Sequence record: MZ475893.1
Strand: one strand, 5' to 3'
Length of the DNA: 64,000 nucleotides
The translations under genes were made by a program, and so were the position numbers. Below the pieces are notes generated by a model. That model was not told the DNA's origin, made no database searches, and saw nothing but the letters and a program-made list of their open reading frames with translations. Shown here one piece after another: positions 12,544 to 33,666 of this stretch (within the stretch, counting starts at the first letter, position 1; each line of letters opens with the position of its first letter).

Positions 12544-13314
12544 ATGAGCAATATCGATACCACAATGCCTGAAGGCAAATGGGAGTTCAATGAGTCGGTT
12601 GCTTGCGTGTTTGATAACATGCTGCAAAACTCTATCCCGTCTTATGGCCGTATGCGTGACCTGACGTATCGTCTGGGTCGTCGCTTCGTAACCCCGGGTT
12701 CAGCTATCGTCGATCTCGGTGCTTCACTCGGCCGAGCTATCGAGCCGTTTGCAAAAGAGTTCGGCAAGTATGACTACCATCATGCTGCTGACGCTCCTGG
12801 CGAAGACTACGAAACAGGCAATCACTATAGCCTGTTCGAAGTAGCGCCTGCGATGCGTGAACGTCTGGTGCAGAATGAAGTGCTCAACTCAGTGAATGCC
12901 AAACTGGAAAGTGAATCGCTGGTAGATACTGACACGTTTATGTTCGACGGTCAGGTGCATTGCTCGTTGATTCTGAGTGTGCTAACTCTCCAGTTCACGC
13001 CGATTGAACATCGTCAACACATTCTGGAAAACGTGTACAACTCACTGCAACCAGGCGGCGCATTCATCCTCGTTGAGAAGGTGTTAGGCGATAACAACTA
13101 TCTCGACAAAATGCTGGTGGACACCTACTACCAAATGAAAGGCGGTAACGGTTACAGCGCCGAGTCGATTGCGACTAAACGTAAGTCACTGGAAGGTGTA
13201 CTCGTTCCTGTTAAAGCAGCGTGGAACGAAGAACTGTTGCGTAAAGCAGGCTTCGGTCAGGTAGAAAGTTTCTATCGCGACCTGAACTTCGCAGGATGGA
13301 TTGCTATTAAGTAA
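12544..13314 (+). CDS. cmoA: carboxy-S-adenosyl-L-methionine synthase (CmoA-like)
   Basis: WEFNESVACVFDNMLQNSIPSY, DLGASLG, TLQF, LQPGGAFILVEK, KRKSLEGVL (Arg aligning with E. coli R199), AGF...NF at C-terminus; collinear with E. coli CmoA along its length. Confidence 0.85.
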   Translation: MSNIDTTMPEGKWEFNESVACVFDNMLQNSIPSYGRMRDLTYRLGRRFVTPGSAIVDLGASLGRAIEPFAKEFGKYDYHHAADAPGEDYETGNHYSLFEVAPAMRERLVQNEVLNSVNAKLESESLVDTDTFMFDGQVHCSLILSVLTLQFTPIEHRQHILENVYNSLQPGGAFILVEKVLGDNNYLDKMLVDTYYQMKGGNGYSAESIATKRKSLEGVLVPVKAAWNEELLRKAGFGQVESFYRDLNFAGWIAIK

Positions 13315-13323
13315 GGAAATACT

Positions 13324-14586
13324 ATGAAAGTAAACGGGCGTATCTTAGCTATCGTCCCACACAAGACAATGCAAGACCGTACCAAGTCGGGTGTGGGTTC
13401 GTACATTGATGGACTAGAGGCATACGGCTTCTGCGACTTTATCACGGACGGAGAGAACAGCTCCGTTGCGAAAAGTCAGTGGTTCACTTACGGTGATACT
13501 ACTCTCAGTGACGGTTATAAGATAGGGCATATCCAGAGCGAGTTGCTGATTGCACTTGAGCGCTTGCCTTACCGTGCGATTATTTGCAGCACGTATGAGG
13601 CGATTGAAGCCTGCGTGTCTCTGGGACTGCCAAAGATTATGCCCGTTTACTATCGCACGCACAACAGCTTTTTGCTCACACAAGATCTCAAGGGTCTTGG
13701 TGCAGAGAAGATCCACCGTGCGTTGTTGCAAGCACGCGTCACAGGGCTGCGCATCCTTGCTAACTGTGATTCGACTGCGATCAATCTTGCTGAGCGCTAT
13801 AAGACGCCAGCACACGTTGCCTACAACTCGTTCTCGGTGCCTGACTACAACCCACCAGCTCGGCGTGTTCCCCAGCTGTTGATTATCTGTCGCTATGAGA
13901 AGGTCAAGCGCACGTTGTTTGCTGCGCGTATTGCTGCTGCCTCAGGATTACCCGTTCGTGTTATGACAGGCAGTGATCGTCAAGTACGCAATTGGGAGAA
14001 AGAGCTGGCTGAGGCGGGTGTCAAAGAATACACCGTCGTCAGTGGCCTTAGTGGTAAACAGAAACTCGAATTTATAGGCGCTTGCACAGTAGCCCTTTCT
14101 ACTGCGAGCGTTGAATCTTTTGCTAACGGTGTGCGTGAGTCTATCCCCTACTGTCCTACCTTTATCGTGCAAACATCCAAGTACGATTGGGCTAAGGACT
14201 ATACGCGCTTCTGTACTGCCGACAAGCATGTTCATATCAGAACTGTTGATCGCGTATCGGACCAAGCCGTAGCTGAAATCGGAAGTGAGATAGCGCGAGT
14301 TGCCACCACACGTTATCTGACAGGTCCGCAGCGTAAACAACTACTGACTGCTTGGGCAAAGCAAGTTGATCGTGGTTGGTCCGACTTTGTTCAGAAGGCT
14401 GTTGTTGACGATGACGGCAAGCCGCTGCGCACCGAGCTATATCAAGAACTGATCGACAAATCAGAAATCGATTGGTCACAAACGCCTACGCTAATGCGTA
14501 CTGTAAATGCGTTACATAAATGCCACGCTCGTTTGGGCCTGACATTTGATGGCACTAAAATCAAATATAAGAGGAAGCGCAAATGA
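13324..14586 (+). CDS. GT-B (GT4-like) glycosyltransferase
   Basis: N-terminal SGVGSY, ILANCDSTA, LLIICRYEKVKR, SVESFANGVRESI (cf. ExFGxxxxEA). Confidence 0.7.
   Translation: MKVNGRILAIVPHKTMQDRTKSGVGSYIDGLEAYGFCDFITDGENSSVAKSQWFTYGDTTLSDGYKIGHIQSELLIALERLPYRAIICSTYEAIEACVSLGLPKIMPVYYRTHNSFLLTQDLKGLGAEKIHRALLQARVTGLRILANCDSTAINLAERYKTPAHVAYNSFSVPDYNPPARRVPQLLIICRYEKVKRTLFAARIAAASGLPVRVMTGSDRQVRNWEKELAEAGVKEYTVVSGLSGKQKLEFIGACTVALSTASVESFANGVRESIPYCPTFIVQTSKYDWAKDYTRFCTADKHVHIRTVDRVSDQAVAEIGSEIARVATTRYLTGPQRKQLLTAWAKQVDRGWSDFVQKAVVDDDGKPLRTELYQELIDKSEIDWSQTPTLMRTVNALHKCHARLGLTFDGTKIKYKRKRK
14501..14508 (+). promoter_or_regulatory. CTGTAAAT motif
   Basis: 74 nt before ATG 14583. Confidence 0.4.
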
Positions 14587-15659
14587 GTGTTATCGGTGAT
14601 ATTTATAACATACCACAACCTTTCGCAATGTATGTCGGGAATTGTGAGACGCGTGCTCAAGCCAAAGTTGCTGCTGGTACAATCGAGTGGGCGCCAGAGA
14701 AAGTGTGCTGCACCGTAGATGATGGTAACAACCTGTTCCCCAACGTACCTTCAATCAACCCTGCTGACGTGCATAAGACAGATGCAGAAACTTTAGTGAT
14801 TGGCTGTGCACCTTTCGGCGGCCGCATTGACGAGCACATGGACAAAGCTATTCGTAGCGCTATCTATCGTGGACGCAACATTGCTGCTGCTATGCATACG
14901 CGCCTGGCGGATAATCCCGAATACGTTGAGCTGGCTGATCGCTACAACGTCAAGCTGTATGACTTCCGTCATCGTCCTGATGCGTACCCACTTGGTACCG
15001 GTGAGAAGCGTAGCGGTCTGCGTCTGTTAACTGTCGGTACTGATAGCTCCTGCGGCAAGAAGTTTACCACGCTATCTCTGTATCGTGAACTCAAGCGCAT
15101 CCACGCAGACACTGTGTTTTGCTCTACTGGGCAAACAGGCTTCCTGATTAGCGGTTGCGGTATCAACAACGACACGATTGTTGCTGACTTCCTCGCCGGT
15201 GCTGCTGAATCACTTTCGCCTGCTGGTCCTGCTGATCGTATCTATCTGATTGAAGGTCAAGGTGCTATCACTCACCCAGCATACACAGGCGGTAGCATGA
15301 GTCTGATTGCCGGCTCGCAGCCTGATCATCTCATCCTGTGCCACGCATGGAACCGTCAGAATCAGTTGGGCGTTAAGCGTAAGCCTGACCTTGATTTTGA
15401 GATGCGTGCTAATATTGAAGCGGCGCGTATTCACGGTCTCCACCCGACCTACATCGGTATCAGCATTAACTTCTCTGAGTGTGATTTGACACAGGACGAG
15501 CAAGATAAAATCCTGTACCAACTCGCATCAACGTATGAGATTCCCGTGTTCGACCCATCACAAGACACTTCTGTGTTGCGTGACCTCGCTCGTATGTTAG
15601 CAACTAAAGCCAAAGCAAGGAGCCTCGATGGCCAAGCATCCCCTGCGCAAGCTGTTTGA
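14583..15659 (+). CDS. DUF1611 family protein (P-loop fold; DgcN-like)
   Basis: LVIGCAPFGG, AAAMH, LTVGTDSSCGKKFT, STGQTG, ADFLAGAAE, IEGQGAITHPAY, GSQPDHLILCH. Confidence 0.85.
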   Translation: MSVIGDIYNIPQPFAMYVGNCETRAQAKVAAGTIEWAPEKVCCTVDDGNNLFPNVPSINPADVHKTDAETLVIGCAPFGGRIDEHMDKAIRSAIYRGRNIAAAMHTRLADNPEYVELADRYNVKLYDFRHRPDAYPLGTGEKRSGLRLLTVGTDSSCGKKFTTLSLYRELKRIHADTVFCSTGQTGFLISGCGINNDTIVADFLAGAAESLSPAGPADRIYLIEGQGAITHPAYTGGSMSLIAGSQPDHLILCHAWNRQNQLGVKRKPDLDFEMRANIEAARIHGLHPTYIGISINFSECDLTQDEQDKILYQLASTYEIPVFDPSQDTSVLRDLARMLATKAKARSLDGQASPAQAV

Positions 15660-16503
15660 ACAGCATGTGAAAAAAGAAGTGAAAGCAGACAAGGTAGCTG
15701 TGCTGCTTTCATCTGGCCTCGATGGTTTGGTCAGTGCGTTAGCTGCACACGATCTCGGTAAGAAGGTGCACGCCTTCACTTTCCAAATGGGTGACAACCC
15801 TAGCTTTGACAGTCGCCACGCACAGATTGTTGCGCAGAAGATGGGGTGGGAGTTCACTCTCGTTAAAGTTCCCACCAGCGTGTCTGCTATCGCATTAGCG
15901 TGGCGCGTGCTGCATTCCAAGTATCGCTGCATTAAGAAGCGTGACTACGAGTGTGCGTACCCTATGGTCTATTGCTACAAGGCAATCAAAGACGCTGGGT
16001 ACAAGTATGTGCTAAGCGGGCTGGTGGCCGATGGTTACTTCCTGTATAACCGTAACACGCATATTCAGAAAATCAGCGGGCCACACTCTGACGCTCAGAA
16101 GTATCATGAGTTCCGTACTCAATACTTTAGTCCGTGGCTTAAACACGGTAAGAAGTCTCTGGGCGTTGACGGGTATAACCCGAGCGGCATGTTGCAGCAT
16201 GAGATGTTGTGCGATAACTTCGGCCTGATTCACGTTAACCCGTGGATGCAAAACAAGGTGTTTGACTACTTCATCAAATACACTTGGCAGGAGTTGAATC
16301 AGCCTAAGCAGAAGATGCCACTAACCGAAGCGTGGGCAGAACACATTGCTCTTGTTGGTCATCGTCCACACAGGGGCTATCAGACAGAAGCCAAAGTGCC
16401 TGAATACTTTGAGCATCTGATCGAGAACCCTGAGATTAACTTCAACGGGCGCAAGCGCATCATGGACGTGGCACGCGACTGGTCCAAACGAGAGCCTGAA
16501 TAA
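15628..16503 (+). CDS. asparagine-synthetase-like ATP-dependent amide ligase, synthetase domain only
   Basis: PP-loop VAVLLSSGLDG, HAFTF, VLSGLVADGYF (cf. SGxGADE), NPW...QKMPL; no N-terminal Cys-glutaminase domain. Confidence 0.8.
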   Translation: MAKHPLRKLFEQHVKKEVKADKVAVLLSSGLDGLVSALAAHDLGKKVHAFTFQMGDNPSFDSRHAQIVAQKMGWEFTLVKVPTSVSAIALAWRVLHSKYRCIKKRDYECAYPMVYCYKAIKDAGYKYVLSGLVADGYFLYNRNTHIQKISGPHSDAQKYHEFRTQYFSPWLKHGKKSLGVDGYNPSGMLQHEMLCDNFGLIHVNPWMQNKVFDYFIKYTWQELNQPKQKMPLTEAWAEHIALVGHRPHRGYQTEAKVPEYFEHLIENPEINFNGRKRIMDVARDWSKREPE

Positions 16504-16758
16504 ATGCATCCTGTTATCACAGACTTTCTTGGGCCTATCGTTAAGCGGCTGGGCTTATTCACTGCTATATTCGGTTTTGTCGGCGTGCTGCTGTCTGTGA
16601 TCGCAGTGCTTGTGTGCCGCCCAGAAGTCCTTCAATACGAATACGATACTGTAAATAGACTTCGTACTGAGGGTATTGTATTCTTGGGTAAAGGCGCTCT
16701 CGTTTACATCGTAGGCGAGATACTTGAAGGCACGTTCAAGTGGAGAAAAGATGATTAA
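16504..16758 (+). CDS. small membrane protein
   Basis: 84 aa with two hydrophobic stretches. Confidence 0.6.
   Translation: MHPVITDFLGPIVKRLGLFTAIFGFVGVLLSVIAVLVCRPEVLQYEYDTVNRLRTEGIVFLGKGALVYIVGEILEGTFKWRKDD
16649..16656 (+). promoter_or_regulatory. CTGTAAAT motif
   Basis: 94 nt before ATG 16751. Confidence 0.35.
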
Positions 16759-17014
16759 CAAATTCGTGATGAAGAAGACTCCGACCATTGAAGCCTGTCA
16801 GTGGAATGGAGAGAACAAGGAAGAGATTGAAGCCTTCCTTGGCGATAGCGGATTCGTTGTTGGGCGTTACGTGCAGATTGGTGTTCTGGATAAATACCAG
16901 AAGCCAACTATTGCTAACGTAAGCGTAGGCAACTATGTGATCAAGCGCGATGATGGTAAGTTCTATGCCATTACTGCGCAAGATCTGTTTGAGAATTATG
17001 TATTAGCAGATTGA
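16751..17014 (+). CDS. conserved phage hypothetical protein
   Basis: IEACQWNGEN...VGNYVIKRDDGKFY...FENY pattern common in phage small proteins; GGAG RBS. Confidence 0.65.
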   Translation: MINKFVMKKTPTIEACQWNGENKEEIEAFLGDSGFVVGRYVQIGVLDKYQKPTIANVSVGNYVIKRDDGKFYAITAQDLFENYVLAD

Positions 17015-17021
17015 GGCCATA

Positions 17022-17474
17022 ATGAATCTGTTTTCTATTTTAAAACAGCAAGTGAAGAAATCCCTGACGACCGAAGCAACGCTTGAGCCAGAAGTGCGCA
17101 AACACTTTGACTGGCGTTTCAGTGTTGACGTCAAAGGTCTGATGTACATTGTAGGCAAGACAGGCGCTAACACCTGCTTCTATCTTGAGCCAGGTCACGT
17201 TGAGCCTACTGCCTGCTATCCTGATGAACTGCTTGCGAAGATTGATAGCTGGGGCGCTGCGAAGTACGTGTCCTACGCTGTCTACTTCAAGAAGTTCAGT
17301 AGCCCTGTAGCTGAGAACATCAAGACGCTTGAGCAGGCCAAGACAGGCAAGCCTAAAGCGTTTAAGAAAGGCTACTTTATCTGTGGCGTAACACCGAAAG
17401 GTAAGCGCGTCAAACTGTGTCGTCTGCACAACAGCCTAAGCGGTATGCAGTGGGTTGATGTAGACCAGAAGTAA
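17022..17474 (+). CDS. hypothetical protein
   Basis: 150 aa, GAGG RBS. Confidence 0.7.
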   Translation: MNLFSILKQQVKKSLTTEATLEPEVRKHFDWRFSVDVKGLMYIVGKTGANTCFYLEPGHVEPTACYPDELLAKIDSWGAAKYVSYAVYFKKFSSPVAENIKTLEQAKTGKPKAFKKGYFICGVTPKGKRVKLCRLHNSLSGMQWVDVDQK

Positions 17475-17488
17475 AACAAGGAGCATAT

Positions 17489-17809
17489 ATGATTAGCGAC
17501 ATTGACATTGGCCATTATTATTGTTCTGCGAGCGGTATACCGTTTCGCGTAAAAGAACGTGCAGCACACGGACAAGATTGTTCTCTGTCGATGATCGTAT
17601 TTGAGAACGTGGAGGCAACTAAGGATTACCCTGTTGGTCAAACTTGGGTGCTTCCAGAATCTCTGTTCGTGAAACAGTATTCCGAATTTACGGAAGGAAA
17701 GTATCATGAACGAAACAACGCTCTTAGAGCATCTGAAAACAAGACACTGGCAACCAGAGAAGCATTTCGGGTGGCTTTCGCCGAAGACCCTGACAGTGCC
17801 ACTGTATAG
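17489..17809 (+). CDS. DUF1653-like small beta-barrel protein
   Basis: GHYY...FRV...IVF...TWVLPESLF pattern; AAGGAG RBS. Confidence 0.5.
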   Translation: MISDIDIGHYYCSASGIPFRVKERAAHGQDCSLSMIVFENVEATKDYPVGQTWVLPESLFVKQYSEFTEGKYHERNNALRASENKTLATREAFRVAFAEDPDSATV

Positions 17810-18222
17810 CTTTGACCGACAGATGAGAGGCGTTCAAGTTTATACGCCTAGCGCACCGAAGAAAGACCCGAACCCTAAAGCGTGTCGTTACTTCACTCGC
17901 GTGTTCGGCGGCAAACAGTTGGTGTGGGGAACGGAAATTAGACCTATACGGGCCGACCGTTTTCTTAACTGAGTCTGTGTTTAAAGCGTGTGCGCTGCAT
18001 CGTCTCGGTCTCAATGCTTGGTCTGTTTTAGGCTCGAACGTGAGTGACTATTTATACCACCAGCTTAGTCTTCTTGACCTGCACTTTGTTTGTCTCGGGG
18101 ATGAGGATAAAGCTGGTGAGGAGTTCAGCCAGACGTTTGGTCGTGGTGCTGTTAGTGCCGACTTGGACGAGATGACTGATGAGCAGTTACTTGATTTAAC
18201 TCTACCACTATTAAGGAAATAG
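17706..18222 (+). pseudogene. TOPRIM (primase-like) protein split by a single-base frameshift
   Basis: Removing one A at 17935-17937 joins VWGTE to LDLYGPTVFLTESVFKA...LGDEDKAG (TOPRIM Glu and DxD). Confidence 0.65.
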
Positions 18223-18223
18223 G

Positions 18224-18652
18224 ATGGAACATAAAGTTGTCGTGCGTATTCTCGGACCTGTTGGCAGCGGTAAGTCTTCTGTTTACGCCAAGCTCGTTAA
18301 AGGTCTGACTGATACCGGCGCTATCATCAAACACGCAGATGAGCAGGCGTGGAAGATGTTGAACAACAGCGGCGAAGTAACTTCGGCCGACACGGTTCTC
18401 GATGAGTTCCGCACCGAAGTTACCTTCGAAGAAGTTGTGATTCGTGACGACTACACCAAGTCTAAGAATCAGATCATGCAGTTCTTCGCGTACTCGCATC
18501 TACCGCCTAACCTGCAAGCTGTAAGCAAACCGATTGCGTTGCTTGCTCAGGAGATGGACCAGAATCTTCCTGACGGTGCTGAGAAAGCCGCTGGTCTGCG
18601 TAAGCTGCTTGAAGCGAAAGACTGTCTGGTCCGTGCGCTGGTGGCTAAGTAA
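18224..18652 (+). CDS. P-loop-like N-terminus fused to helical-hairpin domain
   Basis: ILGPVGSGKS; C-terminal FFAYSHLPPNLQAVSKP...EKAAGLRKLLEAKDCLVRA. Confidence 0.7.
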   Translation: MEHKVVVRILGPVGSGKSSVYAKLVKGLTDTGAIIKHADEQAWKMLNNSGEVTSADTVLDEFRTEVTFEEVVIRDDYTKSKNQIMQFFAYSHLPPNLQAVSKPIALLAQEMDQNLPDGAEKAAGLRKLLEAKDCLVRALVAK

Positions 18653-18666
18653 TTCGGAGAGCAAAC

Positions 18667-19056
18667 ATGCCTAATTTTATTCGCCCTCCTTCATTACTCA
18701 AGTCAGTGCCTACGTCATCAACTGTGGAAGCAACTGACATTTTCGCATCACTCGCACCTATCAACAACGTAATTAACCTAAGTTCCGTTCAAGCTCTGCG
18801 CCGTGAGCAAATCGGTGCTGGTCATGTTGAACAGTTCTCTGAGGCTATTGGTCTGCATCCAGAAGACCCTGCTCCTGAAAATGATCTTGTCAACGTTCCA
18901 GCGATCACTTTCTCCTTTGCAGGAGACGCGTGTGAGACCTGGTATTTCTGCGGACCTGAACGTACCTTAGCTGAATGGGCTGTAGTGCGCGATGCCGTTG
19001 AACAATCTTTTGTTGATAATTCATACCATCATGATATGAACTTCGAAATCAACTAA
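18667..19056 (+). CDS. hypothetical protein
   Basis: 129 aa, GGAG RBS. Confidence 0.7.
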   Translation: MPNFIRPPSLLKSVPTSSTVEATDIFASLAPINNVINLSSVQALRREQIGAGHVEQFSEAIGLHPEDPAPENDLVNVPAITFSFAGDACETWYFCGPERTLAEWAVVRDAVEQSFVDNSYHHDMNFEIN

Positions 19057-19130: not shown

Positions 19131-19532
19131 ATGAGACCTGAAAACATTTCACGCACCTATCGCGTCGGTCAGTCTGACCTGGAGAAAGCACACAATGTCT
19201 GCGGAGAGAACAATGTAACACTCTCAGATGTGGTGCGCAGATACATCGAAAGAATCGTACTGACTGAGGGTGAGTTCCTTATGAACGAGCGTAAGCACGT
19301 ACCTGAGCCCCAACTGAATGTACGCCTGCCCTTTTATATTGCGCACTCCTTTGCATCTGTGTGTAAGTCTCGTGGTACGTTAGCCTCTAAAACCATTCTC
19401 AACTTTGTCAAGAATATTGCTCTTTCCGGGACTATCCCTGAGGAGTTAAAGTATGCTTCTGACGCAGAGTTGCGTGCCTATATTACCTCAGAGCGCTCTC
19501 GCCTCGATGCACTGGAAGCAAAACTCAAATGA
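19131..19532 (+). CDS. putative tandem ribbon-helix-helix regulator
   Basis: RTYRV...TLSDVVRRYIERI and LNVRL...ASKTILNFV, two RelB-like RHH patterns. Confidence 0.5.
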   Translation: MRPENISRTYRVGQSDLEKAHNVCGENNVTLSDVVRRYIERIVLTEGEFLMNERKHVPEPQLNVRLPFYIAHSFASVCKSRGTLASKTILNFVKNIALSGTIPEELKYASDAELRAYITSERSRLDALEAKLK

Positions 19533-20368
19533 TTCTAACTAGTCCCATTCGCTATCAGGGTAACAAGCGCACTCTGATGCCTCTTATTCTCGAACATGCG
19601 CCTGTGAAGGATTGCGTTCGCATGATAGACGCATTCGGTGGTAGTGGTACTGTTGCGCTCAACATGCCTCACAAGTTTCGCATCTACAATGAACTGAGCA
19701 CGCCTGTGTTTGAGATCGTCCAGTTGCTTGCGCATCAAGACCCGAAGAAAACATTGGGTCAGATTAAGCGCATCGTCAAGCGTTTTTGTCTAACCAATAG
19801 CAGCCAAGACAACTACGACATGTTCCGCGCGTATGTTCAGAAGAAGCCGAGTCCGTTGTTCCATTACATCGCACACAGGCACGCACGCTCTAACATGCTG
19901 CGCTTCAACCAGAAAGGCATCTACAACGTGCCGTTCGGTGAGCGTGGCCTGATTGGAAAGTTCGATCAGCTTGAGCAGGAGCTGGTGCAGTTCCATGAAC
20001 GTATGCAGAACACGCACATCACCAACATGCGCTATAACCTGTTGCTCAAGTCTGTGTCAAAGCATATCGGACCGAACACGTTCATTTACTTTGACCCTCC
20101 ATATCTTGCTAGTGGTGCAATGCAATACGGTAAGTGGACTGAGCACAACGAACGCAACCTGCTGTCCGTACTTGAGTATCTGAATCGTCAAGGCTGCCCG
20201 TGGATGTTGAGCAACGTTCTCCAACATCGGCACCACACGAACGACCTGCTCAAGCGCTGGCTAAAGAAACACGCAACGACTGTCATCTATCCTGACAAGT
20301 CTTATTCAATGGCCAACTCTCATTCTGATAGTCACAGCACTATCGAGATTCTGGCAATGAACTACTGA
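19529..20368 (+). CDS. dam: DNA adenine methyltransferase (Dam/D12 class)
   Basis: RYQGNK, DAFGGSGTV, RFNQKGIYNVPFG, YFDPPY. Confidence 0.92.
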   Translation: MILTSPIRYQGNKRTLMPLILEHAPVKDCVRMIDAFGGSGTVALNMPHKFRIYNELSTPVFEIVQLLAHQDPKKTLGQIKRIVKRFCLTNSSQDNYDMFRAYVQKKPSPLFHYIAHRHARSNMLRFNQKGIYNVPFGERGLIGKFDQLEQELVQFHERMQNTHITNMRYNLLLKSVSKHIGPNTFIYFDPPYLASGAMQYGKWTEHNERNLLSVLEYLNRQGCPWMLSNVLQHRHHTNDLLKRWLKKHATTVIYPDKSYSMANSHSDSHSTIEILAMNY

Positions 20369-22924: not shown

Positions 22925-23309
22925 TCAGTTACGTGATCAATTGACCGAAGCTGAATACGCAGAACTTGAGCGCAAGACAGCACGGTCAATCATGGAACAA
23001 GTGTGGGCACTACGCGGCTGGACGGTTAAGCTCGACTGGTGCAACTATATGTGCGACGACGTTGATTGGTTATTCCATGGTAATGAACGTAAAGCACCGG
23101 TTGATCACGCTATGCCGAATTCTGGTGTTGGCACTAGCATTGAGCAGCATCGCCTTAATGTCGTGTTTACTCCTACTGAGGTTAGCGTTACGAACTCACT
23201 GGTAGACAGCCCTGTCACGGGCACTGGTATGTCACTGCGCTGTGCTTACTGCGCGTGGCTTTTAGAAATCGAAAAACAAAAGGCTGCCAATGCGCTGCAA
23301 TCTGACTGA
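22911..23309 (+). CDS. hypothetical protein
   Basis: 132 aa, overlapping neighbours. Confidence 0.55.
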   Translation: MSSVNQLRDQLTEAEYAELERKTARSIMEQVWALRGWTVKLDWCNYMCDDVDWLFHGNERKAPVDHAMPNSGVGTSIEQHRLNVVFTPTEVSVTNSLVDSPVTGTGMSLRCAYCAWLLEIEKQKAANALQSD

Positions 23310-23805
23310 ACTGCCTATCAAACTCGATCAGGCTGAAAACATTATGGGCAGCGTGTTTGCGCTTGCTGCTGGCTCCAAGTCCAAACGCCGTGCTACTGCG
23401 GCAATGCTCATTCACTTCCATGAAGGCTACCCTACTATTATCAGTAGTGGTGTCAATGGCACTGTGCCTGGTGAGAGCAACGTGTGTGAGAACGAAGACC
23501 TCACTCTGACGTTTGCACACGTTACACACGCAGAAGCTAACTGCCTCAATCGCATGGATGAATACAGTCTATGGCCAGAAGAAGAGGACATCCTGTTCTG
23601 CACTGACAGTCCATGTCCTGATTGTTTGCAGCAACTCGAATCTGCTGGTGTGCAGACCATCATTTATGCGCGTGAATACAGACTCACAGAGCATCTGGAT
23701 AAGTCTGCTATTCGCATGTATTGTCTCGATATTGAGAACGTGCGGGCGTCTTTGCTGAAATCTGTAAATCGTATAGACGAAGTGATTGCAACCACACCTA
23801 CTTAA
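23290..23805 (+). CDS. dCMP deaminase-like zinc-dependent deaminase
   Basis: SGVNG, HAEANC, TDSPCPDC, IIYAREY. Confidence 0.88.
   Translation: MRCNLTELPIKLDQAENIMGSVFALAAGSKSKRRATAAMLIHFHEGYPTIISSGVNGTVPGESNVCENEDLTLTFAHVTHAEANCLNRMDEYSLWPEEEDILFCTDSPCPDCLQQLESAGVQTIIYAREYRLTEHLDKSAIRMYCLDIENVRASLLKSVNRIDEVIATTPT
23762..23769 (+). promoter_or_regulatory. CTGTAAAT motif
   Basis: 53 nt before ATG 23823. Confidence 0.45.
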
Positions 23806-27414: not shown

Positions 27415-27728
27415 CACCTCTTATTATGTTTGACGCACGGACCATTCGTGTGCTCAAGCAAAGTTTCGGTCAGGACAAGCCTTTTGTTGTTGCCGGGCTA
27501 AACCCAATAGTTGGCAACAAAGGTGATCGTGTTACTCTCGCTAATGCCTGTAGCGTAGTCGCCATCCCTCGTGTGATGGGACTTGAAGTAGGCCAAGTGC
27601 TTTACGTAGGCACGGATGATGAAGTCTACGCATGGCCTTCTGATATGGTGATGGAATTTGCTTCTGTCTCTGATAACCAAACTCGGACCATTGCTTATGC
27701 ATTGCGTCCAATACTTTCGGATGATTAA
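27411..27728 (+). CDS. hypothetical protein
   Basis: GGAG RBS, ATG 27411. Confidence 0.6.
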   Translation: MTPLIMFDARTIRVLKQSFGQDKPFVVAGLNPIVGNKGDRVTLANACSVVAIPRVMGLEVGQVLYVGTDDEVYAWPSDMVMEFASVSDNQTRTIAYALRPILSDD

Positions 27729-27730
27729 AA

Positions 27731-28831
27731 ATGACAGGTCCTCTCGATCTCACTAACCCACAGCACTTCGAACTGTACTCGCTGCACAGTGTTGATGCAC
27801 AGTATATCAATCTGTGTGACGCACTCCTAACGCAGGGTACGCACGAATCTGACCCAGAGCGCACTGACGATACGTGGCATACGCTGATCGGTATTGGCTT
27901 CCAGTTGTCTAACACCAACATCGCTTTCCCTGCGCTGCTGTCTAAGCGTGTCAACGTCCGTGCAGCTATCGATGAATCCTGCTGGTTCGCACGCGGTGAA
28001 ACGAACATCGCAACTCTCGGTTCTAAAATCTGGAACGAGTGGGCAGATGAAGAAGGTGAGAACGGTCCTATCTACGGCTTCCAGTACCGTAACTGGCCTG
28101 ACATTAAAGTGTTCAACACTGTCGAAGGCATGATTGAGCAGCACATCCCACCAGCGATGATTGAGCGCATCTCGAAAGAGATTAACCGCATGAAGGCGCA
28201 GGGCTATATCGAAACTGCGTTGCCTGACGGTCGCGTGTTGTACGAAGGCTATATCGATCAGTACGCTGATGCACTGCGTCAAATCATGGCGCGTAGTCGT
28301 AGCCGCCGCATTCGTGTGCAAGCGTTCAACCCAGGTTACGTTGGTATGCAGAGCCTGCCGCCGTGTCATACCGAGTTTGAGTTCAACGTGACCAAAGCCA
28401 CTGCGTATGAGATTGCGCAGATGGAAGCACGCTCAATGCGCCCTGACGCTGACTCACTGCATATCGTGGTGACGATGCGCAGCAATGACGCGCTATTGGG
28501 CAGGCCCTTCAATATCGTGGGCTACAGCGCCATGCACCAGTTGTTTGCGAAGTGGGCTGGTCTGAACGTTGGTTCGTTTACTCTGAACGTGACCAATATG
28601 CACATGTACGATCACCACCGCGAAGCGTATGCACAACAGCGTGAGCAGTGGCTGGAGCTACAGACGCAGATGCAGACGACAGGCAAACCTGTTGTTTACC
28701 CTACCCTCGAAATCACTGACGACATTCTGGGCCTGACGCCAGAAGAGCTGCTGGATAACGTCAACGTCGATTGGTTCGAGCTGGTGGACTACTCTCCTAA
28801 ACCTGCTGTTAAAGGACGCGTAACCAAATGA
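27731..28831 (+). CDS. thyA: thymidylate synthase
   Basis: LLSKRV, IWNEWAD, GPIYGFQYR, SRRI, LPPCH, RSNDALLGRPFN, NMHMYDHH. Confidence 0.93.
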   Translation: MTGPLDLTNPQHFELYSLHSVDAQYINLCDALLTQGTHESDPERTDDTWHTLIGIGFQLSNTNIAFPALLSKRVNVRAAIDESCWFARGETNIATLGSKIWNEWADEEGENGPIYGFQYRNWPDIKVFNTVEGMIEQHIPPAMIERISKEINRMKAQGYIETALPDGRVLYEGYIDQYADALRQIMARSRSRRIRVQAFNPGYVGMQSLPPCHTEFEFNVTKATAYEIAQMEARSMRPDADSLHIVVTMRSNDALLGRPFNIVGYSAMHQLFAKWAGLNVGSFTLNVTNMHMYDHHREAYAQQREQWLELQTQMQTTGKPVVYPTLEITDDILGLTPEELLDNVNVDWFELVDYSPKPAVKGRVTK

Positions 28832-29490
28832 TGCTAATCAGCCGCATTGCTGCATTCCTGTATGTTGGATATGCAGAGTCAGTGGAGGACATTCCACGTT
28901 TGCTCGTCGAAAAAGTTAAGGTGCGCATCGAAGATCCCGATTGGGACCCGTTTGATGACGTTACCGTTGAAGATGCACCGCCTATCCTAGAAATGACAGG
29001 CAAGGTCATCTATCATCTGCCACTCAACTGCTTCCTGATTGACGGTCGCATGGAGCAGGATGAATCGTCCGAAGATACGCTCAAGATGCAGAAGCATTGT
29101 CAGACCAACTTCTTCAAGCACAAGCAGACACGCAACGGTCGTGTGGGCATTGCCGTGGACAGCATGATCAGAGAACTGTCTTATGCAGAGGCACAGCACC
29201 CTAACTGGCCTACTGAGCCGCTGCACGCTGGCGCTATCCTCGCAGAAGAAGCAGGTGAGTGTCTGCGTGATTGCGTGTCATACGATGAAACAGGGCGTGA
29301 TGACCTGCTAGCCTCTATGGCCGAAGAAGCTGTGCAGACAGGTGCGATGGCGATTCGTTTTCTGATCAATGCGCATCGTTCTAAAGAGCGCACGCTGCCT
29401 CGCTCTACAGTACGTGACCTGCTGTCAGACACGTCCATTCCTTTGGCTGAGCGTGTTGCTAAACTTCTTGATGTGGTGGACGCTAAATGA
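28828..29490 (+). CDS. protein with C-terminal MazG-like NTP pyrophosphohydrolase helix pair
   Basis: ILAEEAGE...EEAVQTGAMAIR (ExxE...E pattern). Confidence 0.55.
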   Translation: MMLISRIAAFLYVGYAESVEDIPRLLVEKVKVRIEDPDWDPFDDVTVEDAPPILEMTGKVIYHLPLNCFLIDGRMEQDESSEDTLKMQKHCQTNFFKHKQTRNGRVGIAVDSMIRELSYAEAQHPNWPTEPLHAGAILAEEAGECLRDCVSYDETGRDDLLASMAEEAVQTGAMAIRFLINAHRSKERTLPRSTVRDLLSDTSIPLAERVAKLLDVVDAK

Positions 29491-30398
29491 AACTACTTGC
29501 ACTTATCCCATCTGCTACCACCAATGTGTTCCGCACGCTGCATTGTGTAGGCACGGCAGAAGAGTTCCCTGTAGGCGAGCATCCTAAGTGGTCTGGCTTT
29601 GGTTTGAATATGACTAACGTCAAAATCATTCCTGACCTGGCTAAAGACGCCGTGCCTGATTCGTTCTATGTCACTATCGATAGCCACCTCGACTGGTCTG
29701 TTGATCTTGATCGTATCGATACGTTCAGCGCTGATTATCTCATCTGGTGCGGTAAGCATACGCCTTCAATTGAAGCTGTGCTCGAAGCCCACATGATTAA
29801 AGGCCAGTTGCCAAATCTGGTGCAGGACTTCGATGCTTTTGTCGCTGATCTGCAAGAGCGTCTGGACAACATGACCAGCCTCGCTAAAGATCGTATGACC
29901 ATCTCAGGCAGCACGCTGATCGATAGCGACACCACAGCCAAGTACAACCTGTGGGCTATCTATCGTCACTGTCTGATGTTAGACAACAAGATGGTCCTGC
30001 TGTACGGTAAAGACAATCACATCCATGTGTCCGACACGCACGTATCTGAAAAGGGTATCGGCTGGTGGTTGACCGAGCACAACAAACACATGATGAGCAT
30101 TGCACAGCAAAACGATCTGCTTGCCGCTTACATTACGTTTGAACGCGATAGCTCTGGCTATACGTTTGTTGGTGCTGACGGTACTCAGGTTAAACGTCCT
30201 GTCGAAAGCAGCGAGTTCATGCACATGGCGCATCACGGCCTGTTCCCTAAAGTTGTAGTGCGTGAAGACGCAGACGGCCGTAACTTCGAACTGTCGTTTG
30301 ATTACGCCGAATACTTCCCACAAGCGTATCACGATTTTGTCAATCATGCGTGGGCCGGCCGTTCTGATCGTTCACGCGATTTGGTTCGCTTCATCTGA
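29487..30398 (+). CDS. hypothetical protein
   Basis: 303 aa, coupled. Confidence 0.7.
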   Translation: MKLLALIPSATTNVFRTLHCVGTAEEFPVGEHPKWSGFGLNMTNVKIIPDLAKDAVPDSFYVTIDSHLDWSVDLDRIDTFSADYLIWCGKHTPSIEAVLEAHMIKGQLPNLVQDFDAFVADLQERLDNMTSLAKDRMTISGSTLIDSDTTAKYNLWAIYRHCLMLDNKMVLLYGKDNHIHVSDTHVSEKGIGWWLTEHNKHMMSIAQQNDLLAAYITFERDSSGYTFVGADGTQVKRPVESSEFMHMAHHGLFPKVVVREDADGRNFELSFDYAEYFPQAYHDFVNHAWAGRSDRSRDLVRFI

Positions 30399-30420
30399 TC
30401 GTCGCGCTGTCTGCTGTCAG

Positions 30421-30426
30421 TAATTT
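30421..30426 (+). promoter_or_regulatory. TAATTT motif
   Basis: Intergenic, 23 nt before ATG 30450. Confidence 0.35.
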
Positions 30427-30449
30427 GAAGCTACTATAGGAGACAGCGC

Positions 30450-30788
30450 ATGAAATATGATAAGACCAAAGACTACCAACCGTTCAAGTATCTTGAGCCA
30501 GACCCAAAGGCTCCAAGAGTAGGCTTCTACGGTTCGACTGGCCACACTATCACAAAGGACGTTCTGATAGGGCAGGACGTATGCGAGTTTGAGTTCAAGC
30601 CCGAAGAGTTGAACAATATGAATCGCGGTACGTTGCTCTTCCGTGCTAAAGATAGTGGCGGAACTATTGTCGTAAAGAAATGCTCTGTGCTTGGATTGAA
30701 AATGGTAATTACGCTAGAGAGAAGGGTGATTCAGTTCGGCAAGGTTCAAGCTGAATGGATGACCACATCCCGACTGTATAACTACTAA
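30450..30788 (+). CDS. hypothetical protein
   Basis: 112 aa, AGGAG RBS. Confidence 0.7.
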   Translation: MKYDKTKDYQPFKYLEPDPKAPRVGFYGSTGHTITKDVLIGQDVCEFEFKPEELNNMNRGTLLFRAKDSGGTIVVKKCSVLGLKMVITLERRVIQFGKVQAEWMTTSRLYNY

Positions 30789-30796
30789 CTGTAAAT
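30789..30796 (+). promoter_or_regulatory. CTGTAAAT motif
   Basis: Intergenic, 34 nt before ATG 30831. Confidence 0.6.
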
Positions 30797-30830
30797 ACAT
30801 TGTACAGAAGCAACTACAAGAGAAAAGAGA

Positions 30831-31529
30831 ATGGCAAAAATTGCTAAAGCAAAGGAAGGGAAAAAGAAAAGCAACCCTATGTTGATTGACCTGAAAAAGT
30901 TCAAGTCAGTTAAACAGCTTAAGGGTGCGAAGTACAACCCTCGTTTCATTACAGACAGCCGACTGAGAGCGCTCGAAGGTTCTTTGGGCAGCTTCGGTGA
31001 TTTGTCTGGCGTGGTGTTCAACAACAGCGTAGACAGTGGCGTGCTGATCTCAGGCCACCAGCGTCTCAAGTCGATTGAGAAGTGGGACTCGCGCATTGAG
31101 ATTCAGCAAACGTCTGACAAGTACGGCACGGTAGCGCTGGGTTATATCCATGCCACCAGCGCCAAAGGTAAAACGATCAGCATCCCACTGCGTATCGTTA
31201 ACTGGTCAGATAAGAAAGTGGAGTTTGCTGCTAACATTGCTGCGAATGCCCACGGCGGTGAGTTCGATAACAAAAAGCTCGCGTCACTTGTCGAGAAGCT
31301 GGACCTGACTACAATCAAGCCAGCACTTATCGGGCTTGACCCGTTAGAGATTCGCGGCCTGCAACAGACGCTGAGCAAACAAGCTATCGTCGAGCAGGAA
31401 AAGCGTGTTGGTAAAACAACAGGCAAAATGAACGGCAGCACCGGCGAGTTCAAAGAGTACACGACTGATGAAGTTGGTACTGCGCTGACCTGCACCTGCC
31501 CACGTTGTGGCTTTAAGTTCGAGGGATAA
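30831..31529 (+). CDS. ParB/sulfiredoxin-like N-terminal domain protein with C-terminal CPxCG
   Basis: YNPRFI, LISGHQRL, NAHGGEFD, CTCPRCGFKF. Confidence 0.75.
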   Translation: MAKIAKAKEGKKKSNPMLIDLKKFKSVKQLKGAKYNPRFITDSRLRALEGSLGSFGDLSGVVFNNSVDSGVLISGHQRLKSIEKWDSRIEIQQTSDKYGTVALGYIHATSAKGKTISIPLRIVNWSDKKVEFAANIAANAHGGEFDNKKLASLVEKLDLTTIKPALIGLDPLEIRGLQQTLSKQAIVEQEKRVGKTTGKMNGSTGEFKEYTTDEVGTALTCTCPRCGFKFEG

Positions 31530-31530
31530 C

Positions 31531-33666
31531 ATGATCATCAAGCCGCCTACAATGAAAGAGATTAATAAGCTGCCCAAGCCTTGGTCAGGTATGAGTTTCT
31601 TTGCAGGTTGCGGTGGTTCATCTACCGGTCACAAGATGGCCGGTATTAACATCCTACTGAGCAACGAGTTCGTGGACGCGGCTCGTGAATCGTATGAAGC
31701 GAACCATCCAACAACCAAAGTGTTGCCCCACGATATTCGTCGTCTTGACCCGAAAAAGCTGCTTAGCTATTGCGGCCTGAGCCAAGGCGAACTGGACTTG
31801 CTTGACGGCAGTCCTCCGTGCTTTACCGAAGACACGTTCATTCATACTGACACTGGTATGAAGTTCATCACTGATATGCGCATCGGTGACTTCGCTATGA
31901 CCTCTGTTGGTAAGTATCATCCTGTGTATGACACGATGGTGCGCCCGTATGACGGTCAGATGCACAGAATTGAAACGCTGCTCGGTCAGAACAATGCAAC
32001 ACCTGAGCATCCATTCTTTGTTCGTCGTCAGAATGAAGAAACTGGCGGGTACAGTGAGCCGTTCTGGTGTGACGCTAAAGATGTGCAGGAAGGCGATTTG
32101 TTGGGTACGCCTCGTGTTACGCCTGACATGGGTGAAGCACACACGCATGAGATTATCTCGTCGTTGACTGCGCAGCTTGTGCGTTGGATTGCATTGCCTG
32201 AGTTTTGGTGGCTGATTGGTCACTGGTGCAATCGCGGTGCAATCGATAAGATTCGTGGTGTCGATGTTATTCAGTTCACCTCGATGACAGCGATGGAAAA
32301 CTCGCTGGTGGAACAAGCGTTCGACGTGCTCAAGTTAAGCAGCATCAACAGCGCTTCGTCCGACATGGGCGTTCACCGTAAGACCGTCCGTGTTGTTATG
32401 GACACAGACCTGTTGCTGTTCTTGCGTATGTTTATCGCACAGGGCAAGAAGTCTATGTCCCGCCGTATGCCAGGCATGATCTTCCATCTGGCCAAAGAGC
32501 TGAAACAGCAATTCATTCTCGGCTATCTGGGTCGTGATTACGTCACAGCAATGGGCGTTGGTCATGCGTTAGAGGCTGACTCAAAGCGCTTCCTCGTTGA
32601 GATGAATTACCTGTGCTGCTCTGCGTTCAACAGACCGCTGTTCGATGCAATGTTGTTCACTGACTTGCATTACGGCAGTCCTATGTTACCGCCGAGTCGC
32701 TTCATCACCAAAGAGCACATTGGCTTCCTGTTCTTACAAGAAGAGGTTAATTTCTTCTTTGAGTTCGAGCCGGAAGACCCGCATCTGTGGGTAGAAGTGA
32801 TTGAGAACTTTACGCACCATGAAACGTGCAACGTCTACAACTTCTCAGTCAGTGTTGATGAGACGTATGTTGCTAACGGTATGGTCGTGCATAACTGCAA
32901 AGGGTTCTCGACTGCGGGTGTGAAAGAAGACGGCTGGGGCAAAGAGGTTAAGTACAGCGGCAACAAGTATCAGCAAGTCGATGACCTGTTCGATCAGTAT
33001 TGCCGTATGCTCAAGCACATGCAGCCTAAAACGTTCACTGCGGAAAACGTTAGTGGCCTCGTTAAAGGTGCGTCGAAGGGTTACTTCATTGAAATCATGA
33101 AGACCTTTGATCAGCTAGGCTACTATGTGCGAGCACCGTTGCTTAATGCTGCGTGGCTCGGTGTGCCTCAGTCGCGTGAGCGTATCATCTTTATGGGTGT
33201 GCGCAAAGACGTGGCTAAAGCACTCGGCTATAAGACTGCGTTGACTGCTGTGCCTGATGTAACACCTCAATCAAGCATGGCGTTCCTTGCAGATGCACTG
33301 CCGAACATTCGTCGGTATAAAGGTACGGAGCGTGACATTATCAAGTATCTGCCTGCTGTTAACGGGCCGATGCCTACGATTACCGCTGCTGACGCTATCG
33401 CATACGAAACAGCACGCTTCTCCTCTGCTGGCTTCATTGAAGACGACAAAGGGCACAGACGCAAGCTGACGATTGACGAACTCAAAGTTGTATCAGGCAT
33501 GCCTAGTGATTACGTGCTCACAGGTAAGTTTGAAGAACAATGGGAACGTCTCGGTCGTGTGTGCGTACCTGCAATGACGTGTGCAGCGGCAAGCGCGTTG
33601 ATACGCCATGTGCTTGAGCCGTACGCGAAGCTGCGTAAAAAGAAACCTGGGGATCGTTTTCGTTAA
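31531..33666 (+). CDS. C5-cytosine DNA methyltransferase family enzyme, intein-containing; candidate carboxymethyltransferase
   Basis: FFAGCGG (I), NEF (II), DIRRL (III), GSPP-intein-CKGFS (IV), ENVSGL (VI), QSRERI (VIII), RKLTIDE (IX), LGRVCVP (X, Asn replaced by Arg). Confidence 0.9.
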   Translation: MIIKPPTMKEINKLPKPWSGMSFFAGCGGSSTGHKMAGINILLSNEFVDAARESYEANHPTTKVLPHDIRRLDPKKLLSYCGLSQGELDLLDGSPPCFTEDTFIHTDTGMKFITDMRIGDFAMTSVGKYHPVYDTMVRPYDGQMHRIETLLGQNNATPEHPFFVRRQNEETGGYSEPFWCDAKDVQEGDLLGTPRVTPDMGEAHTHEIISSLTAQLVRWIALPEFWWLIGHWCNRGAIDKIRGVDVIQFTSMTAMENSLVEQAFDVLKLSSINSASSDMGVHRKTVRVVMDTDLLLFLRMFIAQGKKSMSRRMPGMIFHLAKELKQQFILGYLGRDYVTAMGVGHALEADSKRFLVEMNYLCCSAFNRPLFDAMLFTDLHYGSPMLPPSRFITKEHIGFLFLQEEVNFFFEFEPEDPHLWVEVIENFTHHETCNVYNFSVSVDETYVANGMVVHNCKGFSTAGVKEDGWGKEVKYSGNKYQQVDDLFDQYCRMLKHMQPKTFTAENVSGLVKGASKGYFIEIMKTFDQLGYYVRAPLLNAAWLGVPQSRERIIFMGVRKDVAKALGYKTALTAVPDVTPQSSMAFLADALPNIRRYKGTERDIIKYLPAVNGPMPTITAADAIAYETARFSSAGFIEDDKGHRRKLTIDELKVVSGMPSDYVLTGKFEEQWERLGRVCVPAMTCAAASALIRHVLEPYAKLRKKKPGDRFR
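31819..32895 (+). mobile_element. intein (359 aa) in catalytic PC motif, degenerate LAGLIDADG region
   Basis: Starts CFTEDTFI, block B ATPEHPFF, remnant WLIGHWCNRG and FILGYLGRD, ends YNFSV...VANGMVVHN followed by +1 Cys. Confidence 0.92.

Follow-up and report, generated by a model that had tools for sequence, protein, structure and literature searches.

The CmoA-CmoX-CmoY pathway of Synechococcus phage S-B43, published in December 2025 (Yang et al. 2025, PMC12783734), places a carboxymethyl group on C5 of DNA cytosines to give 5cxmC and then converts it to a glycine amide, 5-glycylcarboxymethylcytosine. We analysed the first 64 kb of the Erwinia jumbo phage pEa_SNUABM_45 (record MZ475893.1; hereafter the window) and find homologues of all three enzymes. 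Here, however, the genes are split over two loci 15 kb apart, CmoX carries an intein at its catalytic Cys, the ligase belongs to a distinct, highly conserved subtype, and a predicted GT4-like glycosyltransferase (GT) and a DgcN-like DUF1611 protein sit inside the operon, joined in relatives by a racemase, a DAHP synthase and a 150-aa protein. None of these is mentioned in that paper.

Three other described systems bear on the accessory genes. DgcN, the D-glutamate N-acetyltransferase of the DgcN-DgcA pathway (Yu et al. 2023, ISME J 17:537; PDB 7XRJ), shares the two-domain DUF1611 architecture, although the phage protein has no DgcA-type partner beside it and is coupled to a putative DNA-modification ligase. 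Phage DNA glycosyltransferases acting on hydroxylated pyrimidines (T4 alpha/beta-GT; 5mYOX-associated GTs, bioRxiv 10.1101/2023.12.21.572611; arabinosyl-5-hydroxycytosine phages such as HY126, PMC13326640) likewise include GT-B fold enzymes encoded inside DNA-modification clusters and predicted to add the outermost decoration, but the handle proposed here is a carboxymethyl-amide rather than a hydroxyl on the base, no 5mYOX or hydroxymethylase is linked to it, and the closest folds are retaining GT4 enzymes rather than T4 beta-GT. Finally, mycothiol and bacillithiol biosynthesis combines the same three enzyme classes, a GT4 enzyme (MshA/BshA), an ATP-dependent amide ligase and an N-acetyltransferase. 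This is a resemblance by analogy only, as the ligase and acyltransferase families differ, the target here would be DNA, and no deacetylase is present.

Homologues of the CmoA-CmoX-CmoY core

The observation made in an earlier note from sequence alone, a four-gene operon and a distant ParB-like gene coupled to a C5-cytosine methyltransferase with Arg in motif X, is confirmed, with all six open reading frames present at the stated coordinates on the + strand. The CmoA-like carboxy-SAM synthase (12544-13314, 256 aa) best matches CmoA models (TIGR00740, 1.2e-39, 136 bits, below the equivalog cut-off of 193; PHROG 4752, 6e-78), and its best solved relatives are E. coli and H. influenzae CmoA (4GEK and 1IM8, E 4e-28). 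It is 29% identical to E. coli CmoA and 28% to the assayed SpCmoA, and keeps the Lys-Arg pair at E. coli positions 198-199. As the note stated, no CmoB homologue lies in the window (tblastn with E. coli CmoB, best E 0.22), and a search for tRNA genes in the window found none.

The C5 DNA methylase family frame (31507-33666, 719 aa; PF00145 at 6e-38; TIGR00675 at 121 bits, above the 100.65 cut-off) probably starts at the ATG at 31531, giving a 711-aa precursor (31531-33666). Its best PDB hit is SpCmoX (8YF3, 1.8e-54), against 1e-16 for M.HaeIII, and the diagnostic, carboxylate-binding Arg is kept, with R684 of the 719-aa frame (nt 33556-33558) aligning with R350 of SpCmoX. The frame is twice the normal length because it holds a 359-aa intein (31819-32895), which the note did not report, inserted immediately before the catalytic Cys of motif IV. 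The intein is supported by Hint_2, Intein_splicing and TIGR01443 (intein C-terminus) hits; it begins with Cys, ends with His-Asn and is followed by Cys, so that SPP | intein | C restores the SPPC motif named in PMC12783734. Among ENA phage contigs (given L numbers here), the same site is occupied in L006 and empty in L008, where the exteins abut. The intein is present at this site throughout the Erwinia/Dickeya jumbo-phage relatives, at 62-66% identity against 81-87% for the exteins.

One base before the CmoX start codon ends a ParB-like gene (30831-31529, 232 aa), which matches PHROG 620, "ParB-like partition protein", at 2.3e-31 and PHROG 498, a family annotated as DNA methyltransferase (profile positions 36-171 of 633), at 1.7e-17, without a Pfam hit. 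Homologues at 43-46% identity sit directly upstream of CmoX in L006/L008 and L033, and about 1.7 kb upstream in L030. An association of ParBc with CmoX is reported in PMC12783734 for 1,660 contigs.

The CmoY-like amide ligase (15628-16503, 291 aa), of a type we call ligase-1, has an Asn_synthase PP-loop domain (PF00733, 1.7e-13) with no glutaminase domain, and its Asn-synthase matches fall below curated equivalog cut-offs. It is 33% identical to SpCmoY over its full length (E 6e-50), has a stretch of about 14 residues that SpCmoY lacks, and is 58-87% identical across distant phages but only 29% to the ligase of sister phage Y3.

Accessory genes and their genomic contexts

The genes of the first locus are tightly packed, with a 9-nt gap, a 4-nt overlap, a 32-nt overlap and then direct abutment. 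The second gene (13324-14586, 420 aa) gave no Pfam, NCBIfam, PHROG or PDB sequence hit, and is a GT-B/GT4-like glycosyltransferase by predicted fold, with a C-terminal helical extension and a basic tail (AF2 model, pLDDT 82.5, pTM 0.82). A Foldseek search of the PDB returned retaining GT4 enzymes (SdgB, BshA, SenB, GlgM, TarM, MshA and phage HY126 GT) at probability 1.0 and TM 0.5-0.66, with the HY126 enzyme (9IQZ) among the top 20 matches and MshA and BshA among the best, and a search of BFVD returned viral GT1-family proteins. E264 and E272 are invariant and spaced as E-x7-E, relatives give weak PF00534 hits, and one distant homologue is fused to a ParB_N domain.

The DUF1611 protein (14583-15659, 358 aa; PF07755 at 1.4e-46, PF17396 (DUF1611_N) at 5.7e-18) is a relative of DgcN, which the note had not recognised. 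It matches NF041892 DgcN at 4.9e-85 (285 bits, well below the 480 cut-off), and its best PDB relative is 7XRJ (6.8e-50 over residues 10-327), identified in a preprint as D-glutamate acetyltransferase. The P-loop region and many other aligned positions are conserved.

In other phage contigs the genes of both loci are contiguous. The order is ParB-like, CmoX, CmoA, GT, DUF1611, racemase, ligase and the 150-aa protein in L033; ParB-like, CmoX, GT, DUF1611, ligase and CmoA in L006/L007/L008; and CmoX, DUF1611, racemase, ligase and CmoA in L030. DUF1611 is directly upstream of ligase-1 in 12 of 12 contexts, five times with an alanine-racemase-like gene between them that keeps the PLP-Lys and Tyr positions in alignment to alanine racemase 4QHR. 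The GT is present in 7 of the 12, always immediately upstream of DUF1611. Several of these contexts are related phages rather than independent lineages, and L002 is collinear with the window upstream of the module. In L029, L031, L032 and L036 no CmoA or CmoX lies in the sequence examined around the DUF1611-ligase pair, while in the window itself the corresponding distance is 15 kb. Sister phage Y3 keeps CmoA at 83% identity but has the different ligase, no DUF1611 and no GT; AD1/Alexandra has DUF1611 only, and the Snuvirus group has DUF1611 plus GT.

Like the racemase, further candidate members went unremarked in the note. The L002 module carries an N-terminally short AroFGH-type DAHP synthase, which fits a demand for prephenate. 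A conserved basic protein of about 150 aa (17022-17474, + strand, pI 9.5) has homologues at 24-47% identity directly following the module in L002, L007, L030 and L033; it has no Pfam hit, its AF2 model is poor (pLDDT 66), and a fold search found nothing. The candidates for action on DNA, CmoX, ligase-1, GT (8.8-9.3 in five lineages), ParB-like and the 150-aa protein, have pI of about 9, whereas CmoA, DUF1611 and the racemase have pI 5.1-7.0, although this argument is weak because SpCmoY itself is acidic (pI 5.8). We found no description of the accessory set (GT, DgcN-like, sometimes racemase, DAHP synthase and the 150-aa protein) in the literature that we could search.

A proposed extended hypermodification pathway

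We propose, with a probability of roughly 0.6, that the two loci form one post-replicative DNA hypermodification pathway built on the known chemistry and extended by two further enzymes. Steps supported by homology to assayed enzymes come first. The CmoA-like enzyme would convert SAM plus prephenate to carboxy-SAM; the CmoX-like enzyme, matured by protein splicing and probably helped onto DNA by the ParB-like protein, would transfer the carboxymethyl group to C5 of cytosines in phage DNA; and the CmoY-like ligase would adenylate that carboxylate and join it to an amine. The remaining steps are inferred. In this view, the amine is not glycine but a larger amino acid, probably D-configured, supplied by the host in this phage and by the alanine-racemase-like enzyme in relatives. 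The DUF1611 protein would be the obligatory partner of this ligase type and act on that amino-acid moiety, most likely by acyl-CoA-dependent N-acylation of a second amino group, either on the free donor before ligation or on the tethered residue. DgcN, however, acetylates the alpha-amino group that an amide ligase would need, so this role requires either a diamino substrate or a different reaction and is conjecture. The GT would then add a sugar as the last, optional decoration, although a GT needs a nucleophile that a simple amino-acid amide may not offer.

The analysis confirms the open reading frames and supports well, by homology, diagnostic residues and synteny, that homologues of the three core enzymes are present and that the loci belong together; extension of the pathway by the GT and DUF1611 is plausible from their conserved position but unproven, and all the chemistry is inferred, without chemical data for this phage or any relative. 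The predicted product, probably a glycosylated 5cxmC amide that possibly carries a D-amino acid, has not been described. The likely purpose, protection of phage DNA from host nucleases, is inferred from the HhaI resistance reported for 5cxmC DNA.

The note's interpretation is partly supported. The report that it mentioned exists and says what the note stated, but the note's order, amidation followed by glycosylation and/or acylation on DNA, does not follow from the data, since DUF1611 is coupled to the ligase, and often to a racemase, rather than to the GT, is acidic like the small-molecule enzymes of the module, and may act before ligation on the amine donor. The core is already published, and the new part is the extension.

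Alternative readings

A less likely possibility is that the phage makes only a simple 5cxmC amide, as S-B43 does, and that the GT and DUF1611 merely sit in the same early-gene region, serving D-amino-acid or cell-envelope metabolism of the infected cell or glycosylation of a protein. The GT's closest folds act on small molecules, teichoic acid or proteins, DgcN is a catabolic small-molecule enzyme, DUF1611 is acidic, and the DUF1611-ligase pairs noted above have no CmoA or CmoX in the surrounding sequence examined. Against this, GT and DUF1611 lie between cmoA and the ligase here, and between cmoX and the ligase or cmoA in differently ordered modules, with overlapping reading frames. DUF1611 never separates from this CmoY-homologous ligase type in the 12 contexts, and the sister phage lacking DUF1611 has swapped the ligase as well.

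It is doubtful that the GT instead decorates a different base, such as 5-hydroxymethyluracil made at nucleotide level by the thymidylate-synthase homologue at 27731-28831. That protein has a long insertion (341 residues span 263 profile positions), the window also encodes a dCMP-deaminase-like protein, and phage GTs commonly act on hydroxymethylpyrimidines. However, the synthase's best matches are ordinary thymidylate synthases, with TIGR03284 above its cut-off, and the GT's conserved neighbours in all 7 contexts are CmoA or CmoX and DUF1611. None of the genes called within 10 kb in L002, L006/7, L032 or L033 has a thymidylate-synthase Pfam family on record.

Very unlikely is a reading in which CmoA, named "tRNA methyltransferase" in RefSeq and below its equivalog cut-off, raises carboxy-SAM for host CmoB-dependent tRNA modification beside an ordinary SAM-dependent 5-methylcytosine methyltransferase, given that the window lacks a CmoB homologue and tRNA genes, that cmoA is adjacent to cmoX in other phages, and that the C5 enzyme is far closer to SpCmoX than to any methyltransferase structure (1e-16 or weaker) and carries Arg where methyltransferases carry Asn; SpCmoX with this Arg accepts only carboxy-SAM.

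Homology of the window genes to the CmoA-CmoX-CmoY pathway

The region is 100% identical to the deposited sequence of Erwinia phage pEa_SNUABM_45 (MZ475893) at the same coordinates, and is 96% identical to the RefSeq genome of pEa_SNUABM_7, genus Snuvirus. The window is therefore the first 64 kb of a 264-kb jumbo phage of Erwinia amylovora. Almost all of the genes in question are annotated as hypothetical protein in these records. The observation made in an earlier note on this sequence is upheld, as all six ORFs that it described are present. The ParB-like assignment rests on PHROG 620 (2e-31) and not on Pfam. No CmoB homologue and no tRNA gene were found in the window.

The note also referred to a report of phage carboxymethylcytosine and its amides, and this was correct. 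Yang et al. (Nat Commun 2025, PMC12783734) showed for Synechococcus phage S-B43 that CmoA makes carboxy-SAM, that CmoX transfers the carboxymethyl group to DNA cytosine at GC sites, and that CmoY ligates glycine to the carboxylate with ATP, with the glycine amide present in virion DNA; the [M+H]+ values given there are 286.1 for 5cxmdC and 343.1 for its glycine amide. R350 of SpCmoX contacts the carboxylate, and the wild-type enzyme accepts only carboxy-SAM. The authors identified 5,615 candidate CmoX sequences, many of them linked to CmoA, to AMP-forming ligases of several clusters, and to ParBc proteins, and noted that other amine substrates remain to be identified. Their paper does not mention Erwinia, DUF1611, glycosyltransferases, inteins, racemases, or DAHP synthase.

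The C5 enzyme of the window has the fold and motifs of the cytosine-C5 methyltransferase family (PF00145 at 6.3e-38; TIGR00675 at 121 bits, above the cut-off of 100.65), and its best solved relative by far is SpCmoX (PDB 8YF3, 1.8e-54, against 1e-16 for M.HaeIII). The Arg in motif X reported in the note is confirmed, as R684 of the ORF aligns with SpCmoX R350, a position occupied by Asn in methyltransferases. For the CmoA-like protein, CmoA models are the best hits (TIGR00740 at 1.2e-39), although its 136 bits fall below the equivalog cut-off of 193, and its best solved relatives are E. coli and H. influenzae CmoA. It is as distant from E. coli CmoA (29% identity) as from the assayed SpCmoA (28%), and it keeps the Lys-Arg pair at E. 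coli positions 198-199; Arg199 of E. coli CmoA is a basic residue that binds the carboxylate. The putative ligase is a stand-alone Asn-synthase-type PP-loop domain (PF00733 at 1.7e-13) without a glutaminase domain, and is 33% identical to SpCmoY over its full length (E 6e-50). We regard the core pathway, from carboxy-SAM to 5cxmC in DNA and then to an amide, as well supported by homology, although its chemistry, including the use of carboxy-SAM and the formation of 5cxmC, is inferred from sequence alone.

The two loci are one system as judged by synteny elsewhere. CmoX lies 15 kb from CmoA in the window and is adjacent in L030 and L033, two metagenomic phage contigs. L033 carries, without interruption, genes for a ParB-like protein, CmoX, CmoA, a glycosyltransferase (GT), a DUF1611 protein, a racemase-like protein, the ligase, and a 147-aa protein. 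The metagenomic contigs L006, L007, and L008 carry ParB-like, CmoX, GT, DUF1611, ligase, and CmoA genes, whereas L030 carries CmoX, DUF1611, racemase-like, ligase, and CmoA genes with a ParB-like gene 1.7 kb upstream. All of these CmoX homologues have the SPPC motif, and the Arg is likewise present in them, including those of L008, L030, and L033. The co-occurrence of these genes, which the note had set as a test of its own proposal, is thus observed.

An intein at the catalytic Cys of the predicted CmoX-like enzyme

The CmoX ORF is 711 aa from its likely ATG at 31531 because a 359-aa intein (31819-32895) is inserted in it. The N-extein ends in SPP, and the insert starts with Cys, ends in His-Asn, and is followed by Cys. 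Hint, Intein_splicing, and intein C-terminus models match the insert, and no homing-endonuclease family was detected in its middle part. The +1 Cys is thus the catalytic Cys of the SPPC motif, the criterion used by Yang et al., which is whole only after splicing, so that the enzyme cannot be active before it has spliced; the spliced CmoX would be about 352 aa. In an unrelated metagenomic phage the same site is polymorphic, being occupied in L006 and empty in L008, with otherwise equivalent exteins that abut exactly. The intein is present at this site in all Erwinia/Dickeya jumbo-phage relatives examined, where it diverges faster (62-66% identity) than the exteins (81-87%). We also asked whether the long terminase gene (944 aa) holds an intein, and found no Pfam hit.

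Accessory genes and natural variation in the module

The 420-aa protein gave no family assignment in Pfam, NCBIfam, PHROGs, or PDB sequences, and only fold prediction resolved it. It has only a handful of close relatives among 5.8 billion proteins, and a profile search of 1.84 billion representatives found 10 close relatives followed by about 220 distant proteins. The ten sampled for Pfam were 393-865 aa and mostly gave weak Glycos_transf_1 signals, with homologues scoring 16-32 bits around the cut-off of 26.4, and one of them is fused to a ParB_N domain. A 619-aa protein in a phage contig (L018, 1255-3114) fuses a ParB_N domain to a distant homologue of this GT domain. The AF2 model of the window protein is good (pLDDT 82.5, pTM 0.82) and matches retaining GT4 enzymes of the two-Rossmann-domain GT-B fold in Foldseek with probability 1.0 and TM 0.5-0.66, including SdgB, BshA, SenB, GlgM, TarM, MshA, and a phage HY126 glycosyltransferase, as well as viral GT1-family proteins. 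E264 and E272 are invariant in a 7-sequence alignment and form an E-x7-E pair, a signature of the C-terminal domain of GT4 enzymes. The earlier designation of this protein as a glycosyltransferase is therefore right, on fold evidence. Another distant homologue (21% identity) lies in Synechococcus phage BUCT-ZZ01 (L010, 7743-9086) immediately after QueE, QueD, and FolE-type 7-deazaguanine synthesis genes, which hints that this GT clade may decorate other modified bases too.

The DUF1611 protein has the DUF1611_N plus DUF1611 P-loop architecture (PF17396 at 5.7e-18 and PF07755 at 1.4e-46). Its best solved relative is 7XRJ (6.8e-50 over nearly the whole length), which a preprint identifies as the D-glutamate acetyltransferase of Yu et al. 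2023. NCBI's DgcN model is its only hit, but at 285 bits it does not reach the equivalog cut-off of 480, and we therefore consider it DgcN-like rather than DgcN (PMC10030869). No DgcA-type N-acetyl-D-glutamate racemase gene is present in the operon. Relatives carry an alanine-racemase-fold gene instead.

Natural variation in the module was the most informative result. The sister Erwinia phage Y3 (Sasquatchvirus; L014, 2438-4233) keeps CmoA at 83% identity, has a ligase only 29% identical to that of the window followed by a 2OG-Fe(II) oxygenase, and has neither DUF1611 nor GT; it probably makes a different amide adduct. Phages of the AD1/Alexandra type and contig L035 have CmoA, DUF1611, and the window's ligase subtype, which we term ligase-1. 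The window adds the GT between CmoA and DUF1611, and phages of the SNUABM_3 type add to this order an alanine-racemase-like gene between DUF1611 and ligase-1. The metagenomic phage contig L002 has the SNUABM_3 order plus an AroFGH-type DAHP synthase lacking the N-terminal region. Among the remaining contigs, L029 has DUF1611 and ligase-1, L031 has DUF1611, the racemase-like gene, and ligase-1, and L032 and L036 have GT, DUF1611, and ligase-1. A GNAT-family acetyltransferase (302 aa; 11192-12100) lies two genes after this trio in L032, a 224-kb phage contig. No CmoA or CmoX was seen in L029, L031, L032, or L036 within the 10 kb or less examined on each side of the ligase gene (the whole 18.6-kb contig for L036).

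Across 12 contexts DUF1611 always sits directly upstream of ligase-1, five times with only the racemase-like gene between them, and the GT is present in seven contexts, always directly upstream of DUF1611. Several of these contexts are related phages rather than independent lineages, and L002 is collinear with the window upstream of the module. Scans of IMG/VR with DUF1611 and with ligase-1 returned only the same Erwinia/Dickeya phage family, and a scan of JGI metagenomes added two contigs. Ligase-1 is unusually conserved (58-87% identity), whereas in the same phages CmoA is 41-59% identical where it is present, and the GT 25-47%.

The racemase-like gene is absent from the window and is found at 4324-5259 of sequence L012, 12322-13287 of L002, 9064-10008 of L030, 9099-10001 of L031, and 7213-8190 of L033. 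Its product keeps the PLP-Lys and Tyr positions in alignment to an alanine racemase. The DAHP synthase of L002 (14162-15025) lies right after the ligase and would feed the shikimate pathway towards prephenate, the CmoA co-substrate, which fits the prephenate demand that Yang et al. raised as an open question. We considered whether this DAHP_synth_1 protein could be a Kdo-8-phosphate synthase supplying a sugar, but NCBIfam places it with AroFGH DAHP synthases, above the cut-off.

A basic 150-aa protein (p150; 17022-17474) has homologues directly after the module in L002, L007, L030, and L033, and in Y3, AD1, and SNUABM_3, and tracks CmoA/CmoX rather than DUF1611. Because it follows the DAHP synthase in L002, we suspected a chorismate mutase, a possibility that found no support; there is no Pfam hit, the AF2 model is poor (pLDDT 66), and Foldseek gives nothing below E 0.03. 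An 84-aa ORF (16504-16758) abutting the ligase stop codon has a long hydrophobic stretch and is conserved only in the closest relatives; it is not homologous to the small ORFs in the modules of L002 or L032.

A proposed extended pathway and alternative readings

The interpretation offered in the note is partly supported. Its core is an already known system, described only in December 2025, whereas the accessory set of a GT4-like glycosyltransferase and a DgcN-like acyltransferase, with racemase, DAHP synthase, and p150 in relatives, together with the intein at the catalytic Cys, is not described in the literature that we could search. Homology to assayed enzymes supports three steps, in which CmoA makes carboxy-SAM, spliced CmoX makes 5cxmC, and ligase-1 forms an amide. 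The remaining steps, the amine substrate, and the catalytic activities themselves are inferred. The ParB-like protein probably assists CmoX on double-stranded DNA, by analogy only with a phage ParB-like protein that is required by a thymine dioxygenase only on dsDNA (PMC13229309). The distinct subtype of the ligase, its extra loop, and its obligatory DUF1611 partner suggest an amine other than glycine.

In this view, DUF1611, the racemase, and ligase-1 would form a functional core built around a D-configured amino-acid moiety, and the GT would be the optional outermost step on DNA. DgcN acetylates the alpha-amine, however, which an amide ligase would need, so that either the substrate has a second amine or the enzyme performs a different acyl transfer. 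With a second amine, N-acylation could make ligation regiospecific or could cap the tethered residue. A 5cxmC amide of a D-amino acid is itself formally an N-acyl-D-amino acid, the product class of DgcN, and we cannot decide between these possibilities. CmoX, ligase-1, GT, ParB-like, and p150 have pI of about 9, whereas CmoA, DUF1611, and the racemase have pI 5.1-7.0; SpCmoY is acidic, however, which makes this argument weak.

The extension predicts a new, heavier cytosine adduct, and the module points to a concrete, larger product class and to the enzymes likely to build it. A more far-reaching possibility, which we hold only tentatively and consider less likely than not, is that virion DNA of this phage group carries a 5-carboxymethylcytosine amide of a D-amino acid, or of an N-acylated diamino acid, that is additionally glycosylated, an adduct of a kind not yet seen. 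A DgcN-type acyltransferase would then be recruited to DNA modification for the first time, and natural relatives lacking the GT, the racemase, or DUF1611 would display a stepwise series of simpler adducts. Sequenced Erwinia and Dickeya jumbo phages differ by exactly these genes and offer a ready-made natural comparison, such that chemical description of their DNA could assign each gene a mass increment. A D-amino acid or a glycosylated amide in DNA would widen the known chemistry of nucleic-acid modification, and would also matter for how these fire-blight phages evade host nucleases and for how their DNA behaves in sequencing and cloning.

Synteny and the diagnostic Arg argue against three alternatives. 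The GT and DUF1611 could be unrelated passengers. Less plausibly, the GT could serve a hydroxymethyl-pyrimidine made by the thymidylate-synthase homologue at 27731-28831, which has a long internal insertion (366 aa; residues 24-364 span profile positions 2-264) and is accompanied in the window by a dCMP-deaminase-like protein (23290-23805), but the best matches of this homologue are ordinary thymidylate synthases. It is least likely that CmoA serves host tRNA and that the C5 enzyme is an ordinary methyltransferase. A D12-class (Dam-like) N6-adenine DNA methyltransferase (19529-20368; PF02086 at 2e-25) lies between the two loci, and the phage probably also carries 6mA.
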